A DNA stretch of 64,000 nt from Ylistrum balloti (Eukaryota): NCBI RefSeq assembly GCF_031769215.1, contig NW_026782650.1, positions 62,001 through 126,000 of the forward strand. The letters are read 5' to 3'. Under the pieces are notes generated by a model. The model ran no database searches and was not told where the DNA came from. It saw only the letters and a list, made by a program, of their open reading frames with translations. Positions 22,371 to 34,410 of the stretch are shown one piece after another (within the stretch, counting starts at the first letter, position 1; each line of letters opens with the position of its first letter). A program made the position numbers and the translations under genes.

Positions 22371-23869
22371 TTCTATTTTACAGGTACAAAATGTGGGCTA
22401 GAAGGAACTGGTGTGTGTTTAAGAACAATGGATTTTAATTGCCCTAAAAGTATAGTCTCTTTCATAAAAATCAGTATAGTTTACATGATATATGTATATA
22501 AGGGTGAATTTATGATATTTTCTTATATATTGATATATTGTATTATATATATGCATTGCACAAATATTTCACCAAAATATGAATATTCTCAATTTAACAG
22601 CAGTTTTGAAATAAAAAGCACAGTAAAACAATATACAAAATGTTTATACTCATCCTTTTTATTTCAATATCAATATATATAAATTCATGATAAACAAAGT
22701 GTTTTTTACTCGTCTAATTTTAATTCAAATGTCATTCATTTTAAAAAAACAGCACTGAACATATACTAAAATTGAAATATACAACATTTTTAGTCATTTT
22801 ATTTAAAAAGTCATCACACATACAGCACTACAGAAATATTAATATACTATAATTTAAACATAACTGTACAATACAAACACTGTTTATTTCATTTTATTGT
22901 TGTATATGAAATACTAAAGCACATGAAAAAAGTAAACTTACAGAACTAAAATATCGCTACTATCAAATATCCATTGACAAACTTTTAAAACTATTTTTCA
23001 CATTTACTCCACATGAATAAGATGAGAGGCTGAATCTGCATACTGCACCACGTCCATCTGTCCGGCTCTGAATCTGTCCTTCAGTCGTTGTAACTGGGAA
23101 TCCAACTGCCGGTATTTCCTTCGCTCTGATCTTGGTTTTCCTCCTGCATTGATTTGAATAATCTTTGCTTTATTGGTTGCCTGCTCTTTCTGAAGCATCT
23201 GTACAAGAGCATACATGTTGGGATGGGGTTTTCTGCAGATCTTGTTAAGGCGGCTGTGTCATCCCTCCACATGGTTTGTTGTTCTTGCTCCGTCGTTGTC
23301 AAAATGGTTGAATTCTGTGCGATCAGTCTACACCCAGGTCTCTGTGACATAGTCAGTGAATCGGATGACTCCTGGTCGGTCGTCATTCAAGTTTTCTAGT
23401 GCTGCAAACCACACATCCTCAACTTGGTGCACGGGTACTAACCACACTGACGACACACCGCCATTAACACCTCTGGCCACGATGAGATTTCACAGAATTA
23501 CATTTGAATTAAAATTAGATGAGTAAAAAACTGTATGTTTATCATGAATTTATAAATTTTGATATTGAAATAAAAAGGATGAGTTTAAACATTTTGTATA
23601 TTGTTTTACTGTGCTTTTTATTTCAATATTGCTGTTAAAGTGAGAATATTTATATTTTTGTAAAAATATTTGTGCAATGCATATATATAATATAATATAT
23701 CAATATATCAATATATAAGAAAATGTCAGAAATTCACCCTTATATACATATATAATGTAAACTACTGATTTTTATGAAAGAGACTATACTTTTAGGGCAA
23801 TTAAAATCCATTGTTCTTAAACACACACCAGTTCCTTCTAGCCCACATTTTGTACCTGTAAATATAGAA
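22371..23869 (-). mobile_element. Internally deleted Mutator-like (MULE) DNA transposon with ~360-bp TIRs
   Basis: 22371-22732 is an imperfect reverse complement of 23500-23869. The interior encodes a MULE transposase C-terminal remnant. No TSD is recognisable. Confidence 0.8.
23004..23440 (-). pseudogene. MULE transposase C-terminal fragment
   Basis: LVPVHQVEDVWFAALENLNDDRPGVIRFTDYVTETWV*TDRTEFNHFDNDGARTTNHVEG*HSRLNKICRKPHPNMYALVQMLQKEQ... carries the RT(T)N..EGWH.+LN...HPN motif of MULE transposases. In-frame stops at 23330-23328 and 23261-23259. Confidence 0.8.
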
Positions 23870-24605
23870 GTAAACGGTCAGACATGATACGGCAACTGTT
23901 ACAAATATTGTATACACTATCAGGAAGAGAGCAGTCGGTCGTTGACTAGTCAAAACGCTGGTCACCTCAATTCCTCCTAAAAATGTGTTGCCGAGCCATA
24001 CCGAGCTCCTGATCCTCCTAGAAAGCTGCTCTGCGCTGAGCCCTGTGGCAATAGCGTCAGAGATACGTCTGCTAACCTCTGTCTCCAAGTCGCGGTGGTT
24101 ACCACAGTAAGCCAGCATTTGAATGCAGAACTCCTTGGCGAATTCTACACAATCGTCAAGAAGTGCGTTATACCGATGTGGAGCTGCTGTCCACACCTGC
24201 TGTCGAAAGCCTTGATGTTCACATCTGTGTAATGTCCTATGTAATACGATTTGGCGATTCTATGTTCAATGTTTTTGAACAAGTCCATCTTTTTCCTGAT
24301 TTTTTAAGTCCCAAGTTGTTCGTTTTCGAAACATAATTCTAACTCACTCACCATTAAAAGTGCCGGAATGTTAAACGGGTCTGTAGACAACATATCCGCG
24401 AAAAGCTCCCCATCGACCTTGTTCGCCAGTTCCTGTTAACACAAATGAAAACATCGTAGTTCGTCTTGTCGCCAGCTTGAAGAAGTTCTCTGATTTTGGA
24501 AGAGTCCTTGTCTCGATAGGCTTTCACAACGACTTGGTCGAAATCCAACACGTTGTTGACATGGTGTCTCATTGGATCATAGCTTCGCAATACCTTAGCG
24601 CTCAT
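23866..24605 (-). pseudogene. Inactivated duplicate of the nested 256-aa gene at 29751-30521
   Basis: Colinear and highly similar to 29760-30625 (homology 23866-~24725). Lesions: a 22-bp deletion at ~24427 (GCC microhomology) removing WHAFVLCA, a TAC>TAA nonsense at ~24305-24307, a net 1-bp frameshift at ~24190, and a 3' end replaced by the MULE TIR. Confidence 0.9.
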
Positions 24606-26119
24606 TATCACAAAATGCCAGCTCCCTATCTACAAGATGTCTGGTGAATGCTAAAATTGATACGTTTCCATTAGGAAGCAGGTAGGTTTTGTGTATATAT
24701 TTTACAGATCTAGAGCGATTAAGCCAAAAAAAGTTCTGTAGACAACATGTAACAAAACATCGACTAAAGATGGCCTCTAGGCCTGAAATCGAAAGCGAAC
24801 TGTGGTACTGATTTTAACTTTTAGAAATACATGCATATCCGCAGTTAAAGGTGTAATTATGTTTGTTGCTAGACTTACTACATGTATGTAGAGCGACTCG
24901 TGTGAAAAAAAAACAAACTCACAAAGGATCGTTCATTGAAGGACCAGAGAATCTTTTATGCTTAACTTACTTTAGACCAATGCACCTTACTTATCACACA
25001 AACATATGTCAGCTTTGCACAACGACGCACTTAACGCATGCACTGAATGAAGGAAAGTGAAATTCTTCAGACCATATGTACACCTCTTTCTAAATTTTTA
25101 ATGGGCTTTCTCATTTCTTAAATTGGAATATGCAGTGTACAATACACATGATTGTTGGTCATTTGTATATCGGTTGATTATTCTGATATTTTTTAAACGA
25201 CCGACGTTTACAGTTAGAACCCGAAAATAATATATACATAACAGAACAATTTGTAACATTGTATCATAATTATTAAGTAAAATCCTTTGAGAATAACTTA
25301 ATGTTTTATATGAAGAATTGGTTAATTGTTGCAATTGCTTGTGTCGATCTGCCATTATAAAACAGTGAGCTAGCGCAAATAACATTTAAGCAGAAAGGAA
25401 AGAAGTGACGTCAAATTGAAAGGAAAGACGATTCGAGGATCTGATGAAATTCGAGGAAATGAGTTAAATAGACACAAATGGAACAAAAAAAAAACGAAGG
25501 AGATTCGGAGACGAAAGGAAATCTTAAAAAAAACGAAAAAAAAACACCAAAGTATACGTGAGGATCACAGTGATATTCTGGTAATTTGTCGCATTTTGCA
25601 AGGAGACTAGTTGTATCTGGTGTACGTAAATACCTTCAGTAAGATTCTATTAAAATAAGTGATCGTCAGGCTGAAGCTATAGTTATCGTGATGTGTTACA
25701 GGTATATCATATTTATGTCAACAGTTCAGGGCCACATACCTCAGTTGATAGCACGGAGAGAAGACACCAGGTAGCGCGCAATAAAACCACAACGAGGTAA
25801 ATAACATATATTTTATATTCCTGTTTACCTAATGCGCTGTAAATAATGCAATGGCATATGAGTCAGCTCAGCCACAATATTTCAACGCACATATGTATGT
25901 TTAAACGGTGAATTTACAACAGTACTTCATGTTTTCCTGTCATAACATCCTGTTACCTTAAGTAGCCATTAAGATATTGCGTCCTCGTTGCAGCAGGTGA
26001 TAGGTCAAGTCAAAGAACGAAATACACTTCACTGGTGTGACTAATGATGATTTAAACTTTTTGTATTTTTATATTATAGTGTCTAGTCATCTTCACATTT
26101 TTCTGGTCTTGCAATAACT

Positions 26120-29100
26120 ATGGCGACTGATGTACCCCGAACAGTGGAGCTGGGAACACGTGTCGTAACGTTTCCTTCGGTAGAGCTCCAGCAACTGCAA
26201 GATTCCAATCATCTTCTGGGAAATACACAGGCATTACGGGACAAACTACACGAGCAAGGGTATATTTATATAGGATCAGCTACAACTATCAAATCAAGTC
26301 TTATTAGAATAGTTCATAGTAAAAGAAGTACACAACTGCATGCTATTTAATCGCGTGGATAGCAATAATTATAATATCGATTTTGAAATTTGGAGTTTAC
26401 TCTTTCGCCTCCTGAATTTTATCACTTAAACCAGGGCCTTTACATCAATGGCGAGTCATTGAAGGGCAGAACAACCCTATAATACGTGTTTATTCTTTAT
26501 TTGGCTACAGTGTATATAGTTCTAAATTGGTATAGAAAGATGCTATACTATATACACAAAACAGAGGAAGTGTGATTTATAGTATCATAATTGACATACA
26601 TGTGGCCATTATAACGTAATCGTTCTGAACATGGCGACTTCCACTTGACGGATTACACAGTTGACACCTCGTAATTTATTTCAGTTGATTTCTAGTTATA
26701 ATTGGTATAGGGTAATTCAAAGGATGTAAGTATAGGCATTGACCAGTGTTGTTTTTTTTATTTACGATCTTATTAATCAGAGATTTGCAGGAAAGTATAT
26801 ATAGCACTTAACAAGACCGCGTAATCCATACTGAACTGAAATACATAAACTATTAATGCTGTGATCAGACGGAAAATGTCAAAAAACTGTTTCGTAGTTC
26901 CTGTTGTAATAAAATGGAGCTGAATACATAAAGTAACGAACAGGTTAGCTTGTTGAATGTCGGTTTTTCCAGGTACCTCTTTCTTCGAGGATTTCACGAC
27001 AGAGAAGAGGTTCTACAAGCTCGAGAGGCAGTTATACGATATGTGGCTTCTGGGGGCAACGGAAAGATAATGGAACCCGCAACAAAAGGAGTGCTTGATT
27101 CCAGATGTGGTATTGGATGTATTCCCTTCATGGAGGTAGCGTCATGTGTCACACGTGTCGTTGTATTTATAAAACACAGGATATTCTGAATTAAAAAGAT
27201 GCTATTACATATAATAATACATTCACTCCACAAGACCTAGATATTCTTGTAGATTTGACAGGTTTTATAAATACTGTAGGATATATTTATCGTCTGTAAA
27301 TGCCATTGGGTATTGTTTACTAATGTGCCATTTTGTGTAGACATAATTATCAAACAGGTCACAATGTTATCCCTTTCCATCAGCTTTCATGCTCCTGTTA
27401 ATTTGAAATGATTCTGGATTTTAAAAAAAGCAGATTGTACATCGGTCTACATTTTGCAACACTAAAACTAATATTTACGTAGTCCACGACATAGGAAAAC
27501 CAAAAATGAAGCATTATGTATGGGTTTTCTTCTCGTTACAGTTGAGGTATTGGTTTAAGATTGCGGAACATTACAAAACCTCTCGTTTGATTCATATATA
27601 ATTCACTCTATCTTCATCTTGTCTTGCATGACGATAATTTAGCTGCAGTGTGTTATGGTCAAGATCCTGACATGGTGGTTCTTTTGTGATCTACATGAAT
27701 GTCGTTCTAGAGAGCTCTTGTGTTATTTCATTTCCATTGTAACTCAGCTAGTATGAATGTATGAAGGTATTTTATAACTTAAGGATCCCTTATTTTCAAG
27801 TTGGACATTTAAACTACATGTTGGTGTATATAAAACACACAATTCATTTGAATCTTTAATAATGGGATCAGCGACATCGAATAATGACCGTTAGCCTTAC
27901 AGCAGTTGGACAGGACATACCTATAGTGTGTTACAGACCAAACAGATTCTCAGGACGTTGCAATTGTAATCAATCACACGGAAGGCGAAATCAGAAAAAA
28001 ATAATAATGTGACCTACTCATAGTCTGTCACAATGTTAAAAGATTTTTAAGAAAGACAGAACTTCAGAAATAAGAGCACAAATAGCCACAGATGAAGAAG
28101 ATTTGTTTTAACCACACTTTTGCATTTACAGGGAAGAAATGACATCACACATACGGAAGAAGTAATACGGGTACTTGAAGGTCCAAGGCGTAAGTTAGTA
28201 TGTGTGGTTATAATATCAGAAAATCCATCTCTGTTATAAATTGTGTCCATACTGTACACCTTTAATATCAAATGTAGAAAAAGATGTTAAGGAAAGATAC
28301 CAATAACACAATAGAGGGTTAGAGGATAATACCACTAGGGCAATAGATGGCTAGGGGATGATACCACTAGGATAAAAGAGGATTAGAGGATGATACAACT
28401 AGGGCATTAGAGGGTTAGAGGATGATACAACTAGGGCAATAGAGGGCTAGAGGATGATACAACTAGGGCAATAGAGGGCTAGAGGATGATACCACTAGGG
28501 CAATAGAGGGTTAGAGGATGATACAACTAGGACGATAGAGGACAAGGGGATGATACAACTAGGGCAATGGAGGGTCAGGGGATGATACAACTAGGGCAAT
28601 GGAGGACAAGGGGATGATACAACTAGGGAAATAGAGGACAAGAGGATGATACAACTAGGGCAATAGAGGGTCAGGGGATGATACAACTAGGGCAATAGAG
28701 GGCAAGGGGGTGAAACAACTAGGACAATAGAGGCCAAGGGGATGATACCACTAGGGCAATAGAGTCTCCAGATGTTTCGGAAAGACGTGTATGTTGTATT
28801 ATAATACATGAATATTGGTATGGGTAATCAGTTTATCATCGATCAAAATAAAAAAAACGCAGAAATTTGTAAAGGATGAAGCCCATACAGTGATGCTAAA
28901 ATGTTATTACAGTGTTACAACATTCCATACGTATTTATTTTCTTCAGCCAAGAAATTCTTCAAAGAGCTGTTCGGTTCCGAAAGTATTACCTTTGACTAC
29001 AAATGGTTAAGGTAAGTCAGCGTCTCTAGACTGGATCTAATTTCGTTAAGATAACGGAACATAACCATGAACTGGAGGGTCAGTTGTTTGTTCAATGAAT

Positions 29101-32100
29101 ACAGGTAAACAAGACGATCAAACATAACTTATCTTGCAACTGACACTGACATTACCGGAATTAACGGAAGATCCTGACCGTATAAAAATTCTACTGCAAA
29201 GAATGATAATTTATAGAAAATTTGCTTAGGCAAAATGCAATGGGCAGGACCAGCGCTATAAGAATAGATAAGGCCATCAAGTTATGCAATTCATAAAGGG
29301 TGATAGCTTTTTTCGGAAATGTTGAATCAGGATGCCTGTGGGAAACACAATTTCTTAAAGTTATGAAAAATATTTTTTAAAAAAAACTGCAAATAGATGG
29401 ATAAAAAACGAGACTTAAAGTTTTATCAGTAAAATGCAACAGTTCCATACTTGAAATGAAGTTTTCAGAGAAAAAAATAGTTACAAATGTCATACCAAAC
29501 CATGTTCGCCTGCTTTCACTTGTTGTATAAACATACTGCAAACAACATTACAGAACATCAAGCGTACCTTTCCAGAATCTATGAGTCTTTGAAAACAAAA
29601 TGTTAGTTTTCCAATCTCTGATAAATTTTGTTGATAAAACATTATCATAAGCTGACACATTATGGCTATTATTGTGTCGTTGTGTGTTATTGATAACAGG
29701 CTACATTACATAGTTTGACAAAGTCAGGTTAACGGGAATACAGTCCCATATCATTTCAAGAAATAAACGGTCAGACATGATACGACAACTGCTACAAATA
29801 TTGTATACACGATCAGGAAGAGAGTAGTCGGCCGTTGACTAGTCAAAACGCTGGTCACCTCAATTCCTCCTAAAAATGTGTTGCCGAGCCATCCCGAGCT
29901 CCTGATCCTCCTAGAAAGCTGCTCTGCGCTGAGCCCTGTGGCAGTAGCCTCAGAGATACGTCTGTTAACCTCTGCCTCCAAGTCGCGGTGGTTACCACAG
30001 TAAGCCAACATTTGAATGCAGAACTCCTTGGCGAATTCTACACAATCGTCAAGCAGCGCTTTATACCGATGTGGAGCTGCTCTTAACGCTGCGAAGTCGA
30101 AAGCCTTGATGTTCACATCCGTGTAATGTCCTATGTAATACGATTTGGCGATTCTATGTTCAATGTTTTTGAACAAGTCCATCTTTTTCCTGATTTTGTA
30201 AGTCCCAAGTTGTTCGTTTTCGAAACATAATTCTAACTCACTCACCATTAAAAGTGCCGGAATGTCAAACGGGTCTGTAGACAACATATCCGCGAAAAGC
30301 TCCTCATCGACCTTGTTCGCCGCGCATAGAACGAATGCATGCCAGTTCCTGTTAACACAAATGAAAACATCGTAGTCCGTCTTGTCGCCAGCTTGAAGAA
30401 GTTCTCTGATTTTGGTAAAGTCCTTGTCTCGATAGGCTTTCACAATGGCTGGGTCGAAATCCGACACGTTGTTGACATAGTGTCTCATTGGATCATAGCT
30501 TCGCAATACCTTAGCACTCATTATCACAAATTGCCAGCTCCCTATCTACAGGATGTCTGCTGAGTGCACGTTTCCCATAGGTAGCATGTAGATTTTGTGT
30601 ATGTATTTTACAGAGTGATTAAGTCATGCATATATCTGTTAACTTGCTTTCCAGGTAATGGTGTACCGAAGCGGAATACACGCAATCAATCCAAAAATAC
30701 GCCTGTGAGAACAATGGCTTAAATATACCTACAGTAACACAACAGCTAACGTCAGCGAGGTGTCGTGTTGAATTTCTTTTATAAAACCCATACACATACA
30801 CAGTGCGCGATTGTACAGGCACTCGACGGTTCATTATATAATGATTCAGGCTTATTACATGTGTGTAATGGTTGTGTTTAATTTTTGTGCTGTGGTTGAA
30901 GAATGAAGAGCATGATATAATAAAATACAAACTAACATAGAGTCGTGTATTGAAGGACCTAACGTTTTTTGTTGATTGATGAGAATTCATAAAATCGCTG
31001 TTGTATCCGGTAAAGTTTGGAATTTATGCGTGGAACAATTATTTTGGCGTCCGTCATCAGGCAAAATTCGGCGTAACGTCAACGTAAAGTTGGCATAGAC
31101 CAAACAACAACACTGTTTAATTTTCACTACTCTGATTTACAGTCAATGTTGCGAGAAAATTGGAATACATAGCCAGTGTATTATAATACAGCCTATATTT
31201 TAAGACAATGACCATGCATTCTCTATACATCGATGCCCGTTTGATGACTAGAAGAGTTATACTGACAGATTAAAACAGTTAACGTTTGTATAAATAGAAT
31301 ATCTCTTTCAGAGGGATCCACCGTCGCGCGTTTACCGGAGCGCATGTGGATAACGTGTACATGGGTCGTGGCAGTCAGAATCTTGTGACGTTGTGGACAC
31401 CATTCGGTGACGTCAACGTGGAAATGGGCACGCTTTGCATGTGTGAGGGATCACACAAGCTCGAGGGGTGTGTAGTGTCTGATATGGTATATAAATACAT
31501 AAACTATAGGATTTTACATGAGTTTATATCTTATATGTGAATTTATGAAAAAAATCTAAAAATTTTCCACAAATGAGCCTTTGATGAGTTAAAATGAAAA
31601 AAAATCGTTACGAGTTCACAATCGTTAATCATATAACAATGAAATAAATTTAAGAACTTTAAATAACATGATTATTTAGGCAAATATTGTGGAAAATATT
31701 GGTTCGCCAAACTTCAAGTCATGTCCGCTCAACATATATGGTTTCCTGAGTTTTGTTACAGATTGACGTCACAATAAACTATATTACACGTGCAATACGC
31801 AAAAATATTACAAGAATATATGAGTTGAATAAGACAGTCATGTGATAAAAAAAAAACATGGCAAGCCACGGATAAAGCTGGGTTTTGAACGTTATTTCAT
31901 CTTCCAGTAGTTGAAGCAATAAATCAAGGTTAACTTTAGAACTCCTGTGTATACTAGACCTGCTGATGAAGCATATTGTACGAAATGGTACTACAAGTAT
32001 GTCAATCATATATAGATATACTGATCTGTTATACTTTCATTTGATTGCAGCTTCAAGCGATTTCAGGAAACATACGGTAGCTTAGATGTCGAAGCCGCCA

Positions 32101-34410
32101 ATCTTAAAGGTATGCATTATGAGGTATCAATAGTCATTGTCACATACATATCGTTATCTGTCTATTCAATGTTCCGCTGTGAAACAAAACAATCCTTGTT
32201 TTCTCGATACTTTTCTCAAAAAAATAGAAATAACACCAGTATACATTGTTTTACCAAATGGATTGTCTTCTAACAGTGAAAGGAAGATGACTAGACCGTA
32301 ACGTGACTATACTGTCATCAGTTGTTGTGGCCATCTGTAACGTGATTACTTTTCAAGCTATTTGAAAGACTTGAGTTTTTTGGTCTGAAAGGAGATTCAA
32401 AGACCAGAAATATTTGCGATTAAGTTGATAGTTGTATTTCTTAATCCAAAATTATTTATTTATCTCATTATTGAAAATACTCATTATTATCCCTGGAAAT
32501 TCACTTGAAGGGAGCGGCTGGTTCACACACGATCCTGATGAGATCAGTGCCAGGTTCGGCGGTCAATGGAAAACAACAGATTTCAAGGCTGGAGACGTCC
32601 TTCTGTTTACCATGAGGTGACGTCAGATATCATTTATATATCATCGTGTCCCAGCCTCCTTTTCGTAGTTACCTAACAGTTATTTCATGAACAATTTAGT
32701 CAATAACTAAATATGATTTAATGTATGGATCTGAATAATATGCATTTAAAATACTAATTGTGTGATGTTCCGTTAAGATCCGATTTTGATTATCGCTTCA
32801 TCACTTCCTTGACCAAAACACGAAGCAATGAGAGGGCGAAAACACGATGGGAAGGAAGCGAAATTAGTTTGTGTTTAAAACAAGGGAGAGGATTGATATA
32901 CGTAGTTTAGTATGAATAGTCATTTATTCGTTTGCCTTGCCTTGCAGAACTGTCCATATGTCGACCTCCAATTTGACAGATTTCATACGGATAAGCTGTG
33001 ACACACGGTATGCATAATAGGAGTTTTACTCCACCTTCAGATCAACATCGAAAGATGTATTGAGTTAGAAAAATCCATATGTTTTCTCATCTAAATCTTG
33101 CACGAGACTTTTAATTTCGCACACAATAGATTTGTACCTATACTGATTTTTTCTCTGATTATAACGGTTGGTTTCTTCTCTGTTTATAACGATTTCTTCA
33201 ATCAAACGATTTCTTCAGTCAATGTTTATAATGATTTCTTCTCTGTTTATAACGATTTCTTCAATCAATGTTTATAACGATTTCTTCCATGTTTATAATG
33301 ATTTCTTCTCTGTTTATAACGATTTCTGCAGTCAATGTTTATAATGATTTCTTCTCTGTTTATAACGATTTCTTCAATCAAAGTTTATAATGATTTCTTC
33401 TCTGTTTATAACGATTTCTTCAATCAATGTTTATAACGATTTCTTCCATGTTTATAATGATTTCTTCTCTGTTTATAACGATTTCTTCAATCAATGTTTA
33501 TAATGATTTCTTCTCTGTTTATAACGATTTCTTCAATCAATGTTTATAACGATTTCTTCCATGTTTATAATGATTTCTTCTCTGTTTATAACGATTTCTT
33601 CAATCAATGTTTATAATGATTTCTTCTCTGTTTATAACGATTTCTTCAATCAATGTTTATAACGATTTCTTCCATGTTTATAATGATTTCTTCTCTGTTT
33701 ATAACGATTTCTTCAATCAATGTTTATAATGATTTCTTCTCTGTTTATAACGATTTCTTCTCTGTTTATACTGATTTCTTCACTGTTTATACTGATTTCT
33801 TCTCTGTTTACACTGATTTCTTCTCTGTTTATAACGATTTCTTCAATCAATGTTTATAACGATTTCTTCTCTGTTTATAACGATTTCTTCAATCAATGTT
33901 TATAATGATTTCTTCTCTGTTTATAACGATTTCTTCAATGTTTATAATGATTTCTTCTCTGTTTATAACGATTTCTTCTCTGTTTATAACGATTTCTTCA
34001 ATCAATGTTTATAATGATTTCTTCTCTGTTTATAACGATTTCTTCAATCAATGTTTATAACGATTTCTTCCATGTTTATAATGATTTCTTCTCTGTTTAT
34101 AACGATTTCTTCAATCAATGTTTATTTCGATTTCTTTACTGTTTATAATGATTTCTACTCTGTTTATACTGATTTCTTCTCTGTTTATACTGATTTCTTC
34201 TCTGTTTATACTGATTTCTTCACTGTTTATAACGATTTCATCTATACCCTCTTCATTTGTAGATGGCAGCCTGCCTCTGAACCGGTTGACAGAAGGTTTA
34301 TGGGTCGTTTTGATTCTAAACACGATGTTCAGTATGGACTCTATGCAGACAGTGATAAAGTATTGGATTCAGTTACAATGGAAACATTACGCTATAAGTG
34401 GGGAATATAA
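26120..34410 (+). CDS. Phytanoyl-CoA dioxygenase (PhyH) family 2-oxoglutarate/Fe(II) dioxygenase, 317 aa
   Basis: Exons 26120-26259, 26973-27135, 28132-28189, 28948-29011, 31312-31467, 32051-32109, 32511-32616, 32948-33007, 34263-34410 (954 nt, GT-AG, in frame). HxD in TGAHVDNVYMGRG, TLWTPFGD, GSH, distal His in AGDVLLFTMRTVHMS, and RISCDTRWQP fit the PhyH jelly-roll fold. Confidence 0.88.
28309..28764. repeat. 32-bp purine-rich tandem minisatellite, ~14 copies
   Basis: Unit GGGCAATAGAGGGTTAGAGGATGATACAACTA with variants, in dioxygenase intron 3. Confidence 0.95.
29751..30521 (-). CDS. Uncharacterised 256-aa intronless tail-anchored protein; candidate permuted papain-like (PPPDE/LRAT-type) thiol enzyme; nested antisense in dioxygenase intron 4
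   Basis: Uninterrupted 771-nt ORF from ATG 30521 (ATAATGA context). A likely 5'UTR acceptor CCTGTAG sits ~25 nt upstream and is conserved in the duplicate. Motifs DVFICVNRNWH61AFV and YYIGH...RYKALLDDC160VEFAKEFC, then a C-terminal hydrophobic helix TLFLIVYTIFVAVVVSCLTVYF-LK. The existence of a decayed paralog supports a real gene. The enzyme call is inference. Confidence 0.8.
   Translation of the reverse strand: MSAKVLRSYDPMRHYVNNVSDFDPAIVKAYRDKDFTKIRELLQAGDKTDYDVFICVNRNWHAFVLCAANKVDEELFADMLSTDPFDIPALLMVSELELCFENEQLGTYKIRKKMDLFKNIEHRIAKSYYIGHYTDVNIKAFDFAALRAAPHRYKALLDDCVEFAKEFCIQMLAYCGNHRDLEAEVNRRISEATATGLSAEQLSRRIRSSGWLGNTFLGGIEVTSVLTSQRPTTLFLIVYTIFVAVVVSCLTVYFLK
33140..34240. repeat. Complex 20-25-bp pyrimidine-rich minisatellite (~1.1 kb)
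   Basis: Core TGTTTATAA(C/T)GATTTCTTC followed by TC, CA or AATCAA in higher-order patterns. Fills most of the last dioxygenase intron and runs into its acceptor. Confidence 0.95.

Follow-up and report, generated by a model that had tools for sequence, protein, structure and literature searches.

The window analysed here is a stretch of 64,000 nt of Ylistrum balloti DNA (GCF_031769215.1, NW_026782650.1 positions 62,001-126,000), and feature coordinates are given as positions within it (Table 1). It contains a plus-strand PhyH-like dioxygenase gene, whose exons match those of the PhyH gene of Mizuhopecten yessoensis (PF05721) with 81-92% amino acid (aa) identity. On the opposite strand, inside intron 4 of this host gene, lies an intact gene for a 256-aa protein with a candidate His/Cys catalytic pair and a C-terminal hydrophobic helix, and a second, broken copy is present upstream. 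The antisense nesting had been proposed in the original prediction and follows from the splice sites at 29012/29013 (GTAAGT) and 31311/31312 (TTTCAG). The single-exon reading frame was likewise found as predicted, running on the minus strand without interruption over 29751-30527, with the ATG at 30521 as the eukaryotic start. We consider it likely that the product is a tail-anchored, permuted papain-like thiol enzyme, which may act on a lipid or lipidated-protein substrate, and that its gene was recently relocated into the intron.

Table 1. Features of the nested gene, its host and the upstream copy
Feature	Position	Strand	Remarks
Inverted-repeat element, ~1.5 kb	22377-23865		repeats of ~360 bp, 100% complementary over their outer 100 nt; directly adjoins the pseudogene's 3' breakpoint
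Upstream pseudogene copy	23866-24708	-	second copy, syntenic with the Mizuhopecten gene; not noticed in the original prediction
Host exon 4	28944-29012	+	followed by GTAAGT donor
Host intron 4	29013-31311	+	2299 bp; ~740 bp and empty in Mizuhopecten (tblastx against L005)
Host exon 5	31312-31474	+	preceded by TTTCAG acceptor; weak PF05721 PhyH match
Intact single-exon gene, coding sequence (CDS)	29754-30521	-	256 aa; stop codon 29751-29753; evidence from reading frame, homologues and dN/dS
Segment common to both copies	29759-30614	-	CDS without its last 2 codons, together with 93 bp of 5' flank; 95.05% identity over 829 aligned positions
C-terminal transmembrane anchor	29760-29828	-	residues ~232-254, then LK; mean Kyte-Doolittle 2.74 over 19 aa
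Juxtamembrane module	29862-29948	-	residues 192-220, ATATGLSxExLSRxxxSSGxxGNxxLGG; G196, E200, S203, R204, N214 and G219 nearly invariant
Asp159-Cys160 codons	30042-30047	-	Cys160 at 30042-30044, proposed nucleophile, close to the N-terminal end of core helix 156-174; paired by hhalign with LRAT and PPPDE catalytic Cys
Tyr108 codon, beta4	30198-30200	-	nearly invariant; paired by hhalign with the Y of LRAT-domain 'YrI'; TAA in the upstream pseudogene
Glu97 codon, beta3	30231-30233	-	candidate third catalytic residue that may orient His61
His61 codon	30339-30341	-	proposed general base at the start of beta2 (DSSP strand 62-68)

The 256-aa open reading frame (ORF) is a real gene of an ancient metazoan family and is under purifying selection. 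It stands out from chance by its base composition (GC 0.44-0.48 inside 29751-30521 versus 0.31-0.38 in both flanks), by the 132 homologues found in a word-indexed search, which share 42-75% identity over the full length and are nearly all 250-270 aa long, and by a dN/dS of 0.156 (dS 0.94) against the Mizuhopecten orthologue. An exhaustive phmmer search with the protein added more remote members at 22-40% identity. Across the 648-Mb genome there is one intact copy, the intron ORF, plus the broken one, and no others. Introns are likewise missing from the CDS in Mizuhopecten, Mercenaria, Patiria and Stylophora; in all four, the length of the gene is 3 x aa + 3. Regarding transcription in this organism, the ORF stretch matched no RNA run; the single matching run, X1, consists of independent short-read DNA contigs and informs neither transcription nor strand. 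Contigs of orthologues in Logan and the European Nucleotide Archive were metagenomic or without poly(A), and hence gave no evidence of expression.

Named homologues come from bivalves (Mizuhopecten, Mercenaria, Sinanodonta, Potamilus and Mytilus), a gastropod (Lottia), corals (Stylophora and Oculina), a sponge (Ephydatia) and echinoderms (Patiria, Acanthaster, Antedon, Anneissia and Amphiura), while no vertebrate, arthropod or nematode names occur among the 135 family hits. A literature search on the gene identifiers of the orthologues found nothing, and no biochemistry for any family member. Over 156 aligned family sequences of at least 200 aa, the two residues singled out in the original prediction hold up well: His61, which lies within DVFICVNRNWHAFV, is kept in 147 and Cys160, within YKALLDDCVEFAKEFC, in 144, both of them together in 142. 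Comparable conservation is seen for Asp159 and Cys168 (151/156 each), Phe163 (153/156), Tyr108 and Pro150 (149/156 each). At position 97, on strand beta3, 138 sequences have Glu, 10 have Asp, 4 have His and 1 has Gln; third residues of papain-like triads are known to vary over this same range (PMC10318531, PMC3142127).

Sequences without the His61-Cys160 pair are either fragments or members of four small divergent clades. In the two clades where His61 has become Arg, Cys160 has changed too, to Glu or Ala, and such joint loss is expected if His61 and Cys160 work together. The His61/Cys160 states are R+E, R+A, H+G and Q+S for P0155/P0174/P0175, P0156/P0176/P0177, P0140/P0178/P0179 and P0138, respectively; the clades without one or both residues are probably pseudoenzyme offshoots of the family. 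Separately, a 13-kb contig of GCA_020063875.1 (GC 0.36) carries three adjacent divergent paralogues, 215-257 aa in length and all having a C-terminal transmembrane domain (TMD; L025:2542-5208). The trio marks a distant lineage in which the family has expanded locally in tandem, and atlas features give an unconfirmed hint of a Nucleocytoviricota cluster (score 0.85).

To what fold does this conserved protein belong? An AlphaFold2 model built with the family alignment has a predicted local distance difference test score (pLDDT) of 80.9 over the full length and of 84.6 for residues 1-200, the latter with a predicted TM-score of 0.81. The predicted elements follow one another as beta1 (47-57), His61, beta2 (62-68), a variable insert, beta3 (92-102, with Glu97), beta4 (107-116, with Tyr108), beta5 (124-137), a helix and the core helix (156-174, with Cys160). 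This is the order of the permuted papain-like superfamily: His61 precedes strand 62-68 and Cys160 lies in helix 156-174, with pLDDT above 90 in these blocks, and a polar residue (E/D/H/Q) occupies position 97 on the strand after the His, as would suit a third catalytic residue.

Structural comparison hints at the same superfamily. With VIA-align, the domain model was compared with 48,161 representative chains, and one small superfamily supplies 7 of the 10 best. The matches, each given with the three values that follow the name in unlabelled columns, include CLN5 (6r99; 6.5, 137, 4.8), TseH (6v98; 6.3, 117, 3.8), DeSI-1 (2wp7; 5.6, 107, 3.9), Aichivirus 2A (7zv6; 3.9, 94, 3.6), PLAAT4 (7zot; 3.6, 89, 4.5), YiiX (2if6; 3.1, 104, 4.5) and BcPPNE (3kw0; 3.0, 99, 4.4). 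Independently, sequence-only language-model features pick the PPPDE, LRAT, CLN5, TseH and IcsB_M clusters, and a shape search of the ESM atlas returned fungal PPPDE-like DUF6540 models (TM-scores 0.54/0.72, 129 residues aligned at 2.8 Å). Residues 12-123 of PLAAT4 align with 53-170 of the model, ranges that would be consistent with adjacent His and Cys side chains in the predicted structure. Foldseek, which the original prediction had put forward as a check, found no match at E <=0.001 (full-length and domain models against the PDB, domain model against BFVD). Profile comparison with hhalign placed the catalytic Cys of LRAT and PPPDE domains on Cys160.

At the sequence level, no link to a named family reaches that family's threshold. 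Aligned to five single-exon LRAT domains from the same genome, the family profile scored 25.1 (P 0.002), its best profile-profile score, versus a maximum of 20.6 in 100 column-shuffles and 11.7 for the reversed alignment; Tyr108 fell on the conserved Tyr of these domains. Against PPPDE exons the register was kept at RY..LL..C..F (P 0.02-0.04), and two distant family members have sub-threshold PF05903 hits at this same motif (12-15 bits versus a cutoff of 29.2). The D-C motifs were not aligned when hhalign was run against CLN5 exons of the same genome. Three unionid orthologues bear the automatic UniProt name 'LRAT domain-containing protein'. A Pfam hidden Markov model (HMM) scan of the protein and 30 homologues gave nothing relevant, with no PF04970 hit at E up to 10; sequence searches of the PDB (phmmer and two profile searches) returned noise only; and when 5.8 billion proteins were searched with a profile built from 40 aligned sequences, the same family alone was recovered, with no Pfam-annotated bridge. 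Genome-wide HMM searches with PF15014, PF05903 and PF04970 found the canonical genes and not the ORF at 29751-30521, which is absent from the 17 places found with PF04970, so that by family HMM the protein belongs to none of the three. Given the structural matches, the sub-threshold LRAT and PPPDE alignments and the lack of any HMM match, we therefore regard it as a probable member of the permuted NlpC/P60 superfamily that stands outside all its named families. The divergent, unnamed family of permuted papain-like type envisaged in the original prediction is thus supported, as is its D-C in place of N-C.

With the PLAAT/HRASLS and LRAT proteins (PF04970) the protein shares a His placed before the Cys, as in the permuted order, a short hairpin of the form beta1-turn-His-beta2 (WHA in this protein and WHH in the LRAT domains of the same genome), the motif Y..(I/L)(I/L).D(N/D)C..FA..FC and a C-terminal membrane anchor, while its Cys motif is DCVEF rather than the NCE(H/S)F of the LRAT type. 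CLN5 (PF15014) is a lysosomal S-depalmitoylase and bis(monoacylglycero)phosphate (BMP) synthase. It has the same D-C dipeptide, FDC in the CLN5 of Y. balloti and Asp279-Cys280 in the human protein, and uses Glu183 to orient its catalytic His (PMC9012467). However, CLN5 is secreted, lysosomal and glycosylated, whereas the ORF family lacks a signal peptide and has a tail anchor; moreover, the CLN5 HMM does not match the ORF protein, and a canonical CLN5 gene is found elsewhere in the genome. PPPDE proteins (DeSI-1 and DeSI-2; PF05903, Peptidase_C97) differ in their long loop before the His, their lack of an anchor and their N-C dipeptide, and the ORF protein stays below the Pfam threshold. The bacterial type VI secretion effector TseH (PF25218) and the picornavirus 2A H-box/NC proteins, which are viral accessory proteins, have no sequence relationship to the protein, and their architecture and biology are different. 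The genome also has many single-exon LRAT-domain ORFs of 413-567 aa, three of them in tandem (G000:C36:1075264-1096051); these make up an expanded LRAT-like family of the canonical kind, separate from the gene at 29751-30521.

The C-terminal hydrophobic helix ending in LK was also borne out. It contains a 19-aa peak segment followed by 4 residues, the final two being LK, and one strongly hydrophobic segment lies within 13 residues of the C-terminus in 40 of 40 aligned members (median Kyte-Doolittle 2.9), leaving a tail with a median of 6 residues. Among the 40, P0163 alone has a hydrophobic segment at the N-terminus as well: the top segment of the 19-aa scan is N-terminal in this protein, and the C-terminal one scores 2.45. 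A single predicted TMD no more than about 30 residues from the C-terminus, together with the lack of a signal peptide, identifies the family proteins as tail-anchored as far as can be read from their sequences. Within the TMD, a Tyr-Pro pair is conserved in the family and is Tyr-Thr in the Y. balloti protein. Between catalytic domain and TMD sits the conserved juxtamembrane module, in a region of low pLDDT; a feature search of the ESM atlas with residues 176-256 gave no usable match and no known relatives of the module. In one homologue of 379 aa (P0122), the module recurs four times before the TMD as A-x-G-F-x-x-E/K-L-S-R...G-N. The sequences suggest that it may be an independent modular unit.

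How might such a protein work? PLAAT and LRAT enzymes transfer acyl groups of phospholipids, PPPDE proteins and CLN5 are palmitoyl thioesterases, and CLN5 also carries out transacylation. By analogy, a domain of approximately 230 residues would face the cytosol, held on the membrane by the C-terminal tail anchor, and residues 45-175 would adopt the circularly permuted papain-like (NlpC/P60) fold. The putative triad would consist of His61 at the start of beta2, Glu97 on beta3 and Cys160 in the N-terminal part of the core helix. His61, oriented by Glu97, would activate Cys160 for attack on an ester, thioester or amide carbonyl, giving a covalent acyl-enzyme as in LRAT/PLAAT, PPPDE and CLN5, from which water or an acceptor would take over the acyl group. 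From these analogies a permuted papain-like thiol enzyme is the probable class. For the substrate class, lipid acyl chains of phospholipids or S-acylated proteins, our judgement is evenly balanced; membrane tethering and the nearest relatives nevertheless favour lipid acyl or lipidated-protein substrates over ubiquitin-like modifiers.

The same fold and dyad could instead belong to a membrane-tethered deubiquitinase or deSUMOylase of the PPPDE/DeSI kind, acting on proteins of membranes or organelle surfaces. We think this unlikely, since PPPDE proteins themselves show strong palmitoyl-thioesterase activity and weak deubiquitinase or deSUMOylase activity (PMC9012467), the other top matches (CLN5, TseH, PLAAT4, YiiX and BcPPNE) are not proteases of ubiquitin-like proteins, the best profile-profile score is to LRAT domains, and the tail anchor is the architecture of the PLAATs. 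More doubtful still is a likeness of topology alone, in which the protein would be a non-catalytic, tail-anchored adaptor or structural protein with His61, Cys160, Cys55 and Cys168 conserved for folding, metal binding or lipidation. Against this stand the concentration of the best chains in one superfamily, made up of the same families as those picked by the language-model features; the permuted order and spacing, with the His where a strand begins, the Cys close to the N-terminal end of a helix and an acidic or polar side chain on the strand that follows; the loss of His and Cys together; and an hhalign score, with Cys on Cys, above all 100 shuffles.

The locus also holds a history of the gene. 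The Mizuhopecten orthologue and PhyH are divergently oriented, with 2.9 kb between the orthologue and PhyH exon 1 downstream of it, and the pseudogene of Y. balloti occupies the syntenic site. A 22-bp deletion has taken codons 60-67, and with them His61, out of this copy, which also has a stop codon (TAA) in place of Tyr108 at 24304-24306 and a net -1 frameshift near codon 142, and has lost its 3' end with the last codons. Differences between the copies are distributed over codon positions as 9/11/11, with 22 nonsynonymous and 8 synonymous, and for the 22 replacements Mizuhopecten shares the state of the intron copy in 17 and that of the upstream copy in 3. This polarity and the lesions argue that the upstream copy is the decayed parent and the intron copy the constrained functional survivor. 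We infer a recent duplication that placed a copy of the gene, ancestrally located upstream of PhyH, in intron 4 of PhyH, with decay of the parent thereafter. As for the mode of copying, a retrocopy origin finds no support, there being no poly(A) tract and no shared 3' UTR; intron loss is uninformative here, as the gene is intronless everywhere.

The inverted-repeat element next to the pseudogene has 71 matches elsewhere in the genome, the longest approximately 20 of which share 80-92% identity, and it is probably a recently inserted transposon of the foldback or miniature inverted-repeat transposable element type. The 3' end of the parent gene was sought beyond this element and no recognisable continuation was found, so that simple insertion of the element into the parent is not proven. 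X1 contigs bridge both gene-intron junctions and resolve the two copies at equal depth over 30388-30509. The sole X1 contig that covers codon 61 has the 22-bp deletion but elsewhere closely resembles the intron copy, and thus looks as if the assembly had merged the two copies into a mosaic. That the intron copy is itself a young, possibly silent duplicate, so far without a disabling mutation in a lineage that is losing the gene, is very improbable: its recency (5% diverged from the broken twin), the shared 5' flank of just 93 bp, the lack of an RNA match and the deletion in the mosaic-looking contig would all accord with this, but of the amino acid changes since the duplication 17 are on the other copy against 3 on this one, every family-invariant residue is intact in the intron copy, no other intact copy exists in the genome, and X1 shows two distinct copies at equal depth.

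Conservation of the nesting across molluscs, a check named in the original prediction, was not found: intron 4 is empty in Mizuhopecten, and the Mercenaria gene has other neighbours. Conserved nesting or PhyH linkage beyond scallops is ruled out, with unrelated neighbours for the Mercenaria, Patiria and Stylophora orthologues. In Patiria miniata the orthologue (L007:1-20813) lies between two opposite-strand gene models resembling receptor tyrosine phosphatases, and may be nested as well, in a different host gene.

Several repeats accompany the Y. balloti host gene. Just 5' of the nested gene, intron 4 contains a dispersed high-copy repeat of approximately 230-260 bp (~30970-31226), with 691 candidates in the genome, matches of 74-80% identity and an X1 depth of approximately 1000x versus approximately 10x in its flanks. 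PhyH intron 3 contains a purine-rich minisatellite (28309-28764; 14 copies of 32 bp with higher-order periods of 64 and 96 bp), which explains why GC and AT skew are strong there. The last PhyH exon to be recognised is closely followed by an AT-rich tandem array of approximately 1.1 kb (33139-34243; periods 46, 67 and 113 bp), which yields many spurious overlapping ORFs.

For the organism, the locus presents a clean, datable gene relocation, in which a gene was copied into its neighbour's intron and the parent was lost via deletion, stop codon, frameshift and, probably, a transposon; nested antisense gene pairs can arise in this way without a functional link to the host gene. For the family, the permuted NlpC/P60 enzymes (PLAATs, LRAT, CLN5 and DeSI) serve in phospholipid remodelling, vitamin A storage, organelle degradation, lysosomal lipid synthesis and protein de-acylation. 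Tentatively, and with more doubt than we attach to the enzyme class, the protein could be the founding member of a pan-metazoan family without a Pfam entry, from sponge to echinoderm, of cytosol-facing, tail-anchored Cys-His-Glu acyl-hydrolases or transferases. Such a family would be the cytosolic-face counterpart of CLN5 and the PLAATs, with the juxtamembrane module and the Tyr-Pro TMD coupling catalysis to a specific membrane partner or lipid. If true, this would add an unstudied membrane-anchored enzyme family, present in early-branching and marine animals and absent from the usual model organisms, and would provide a new family for Pfam and MEROPS.

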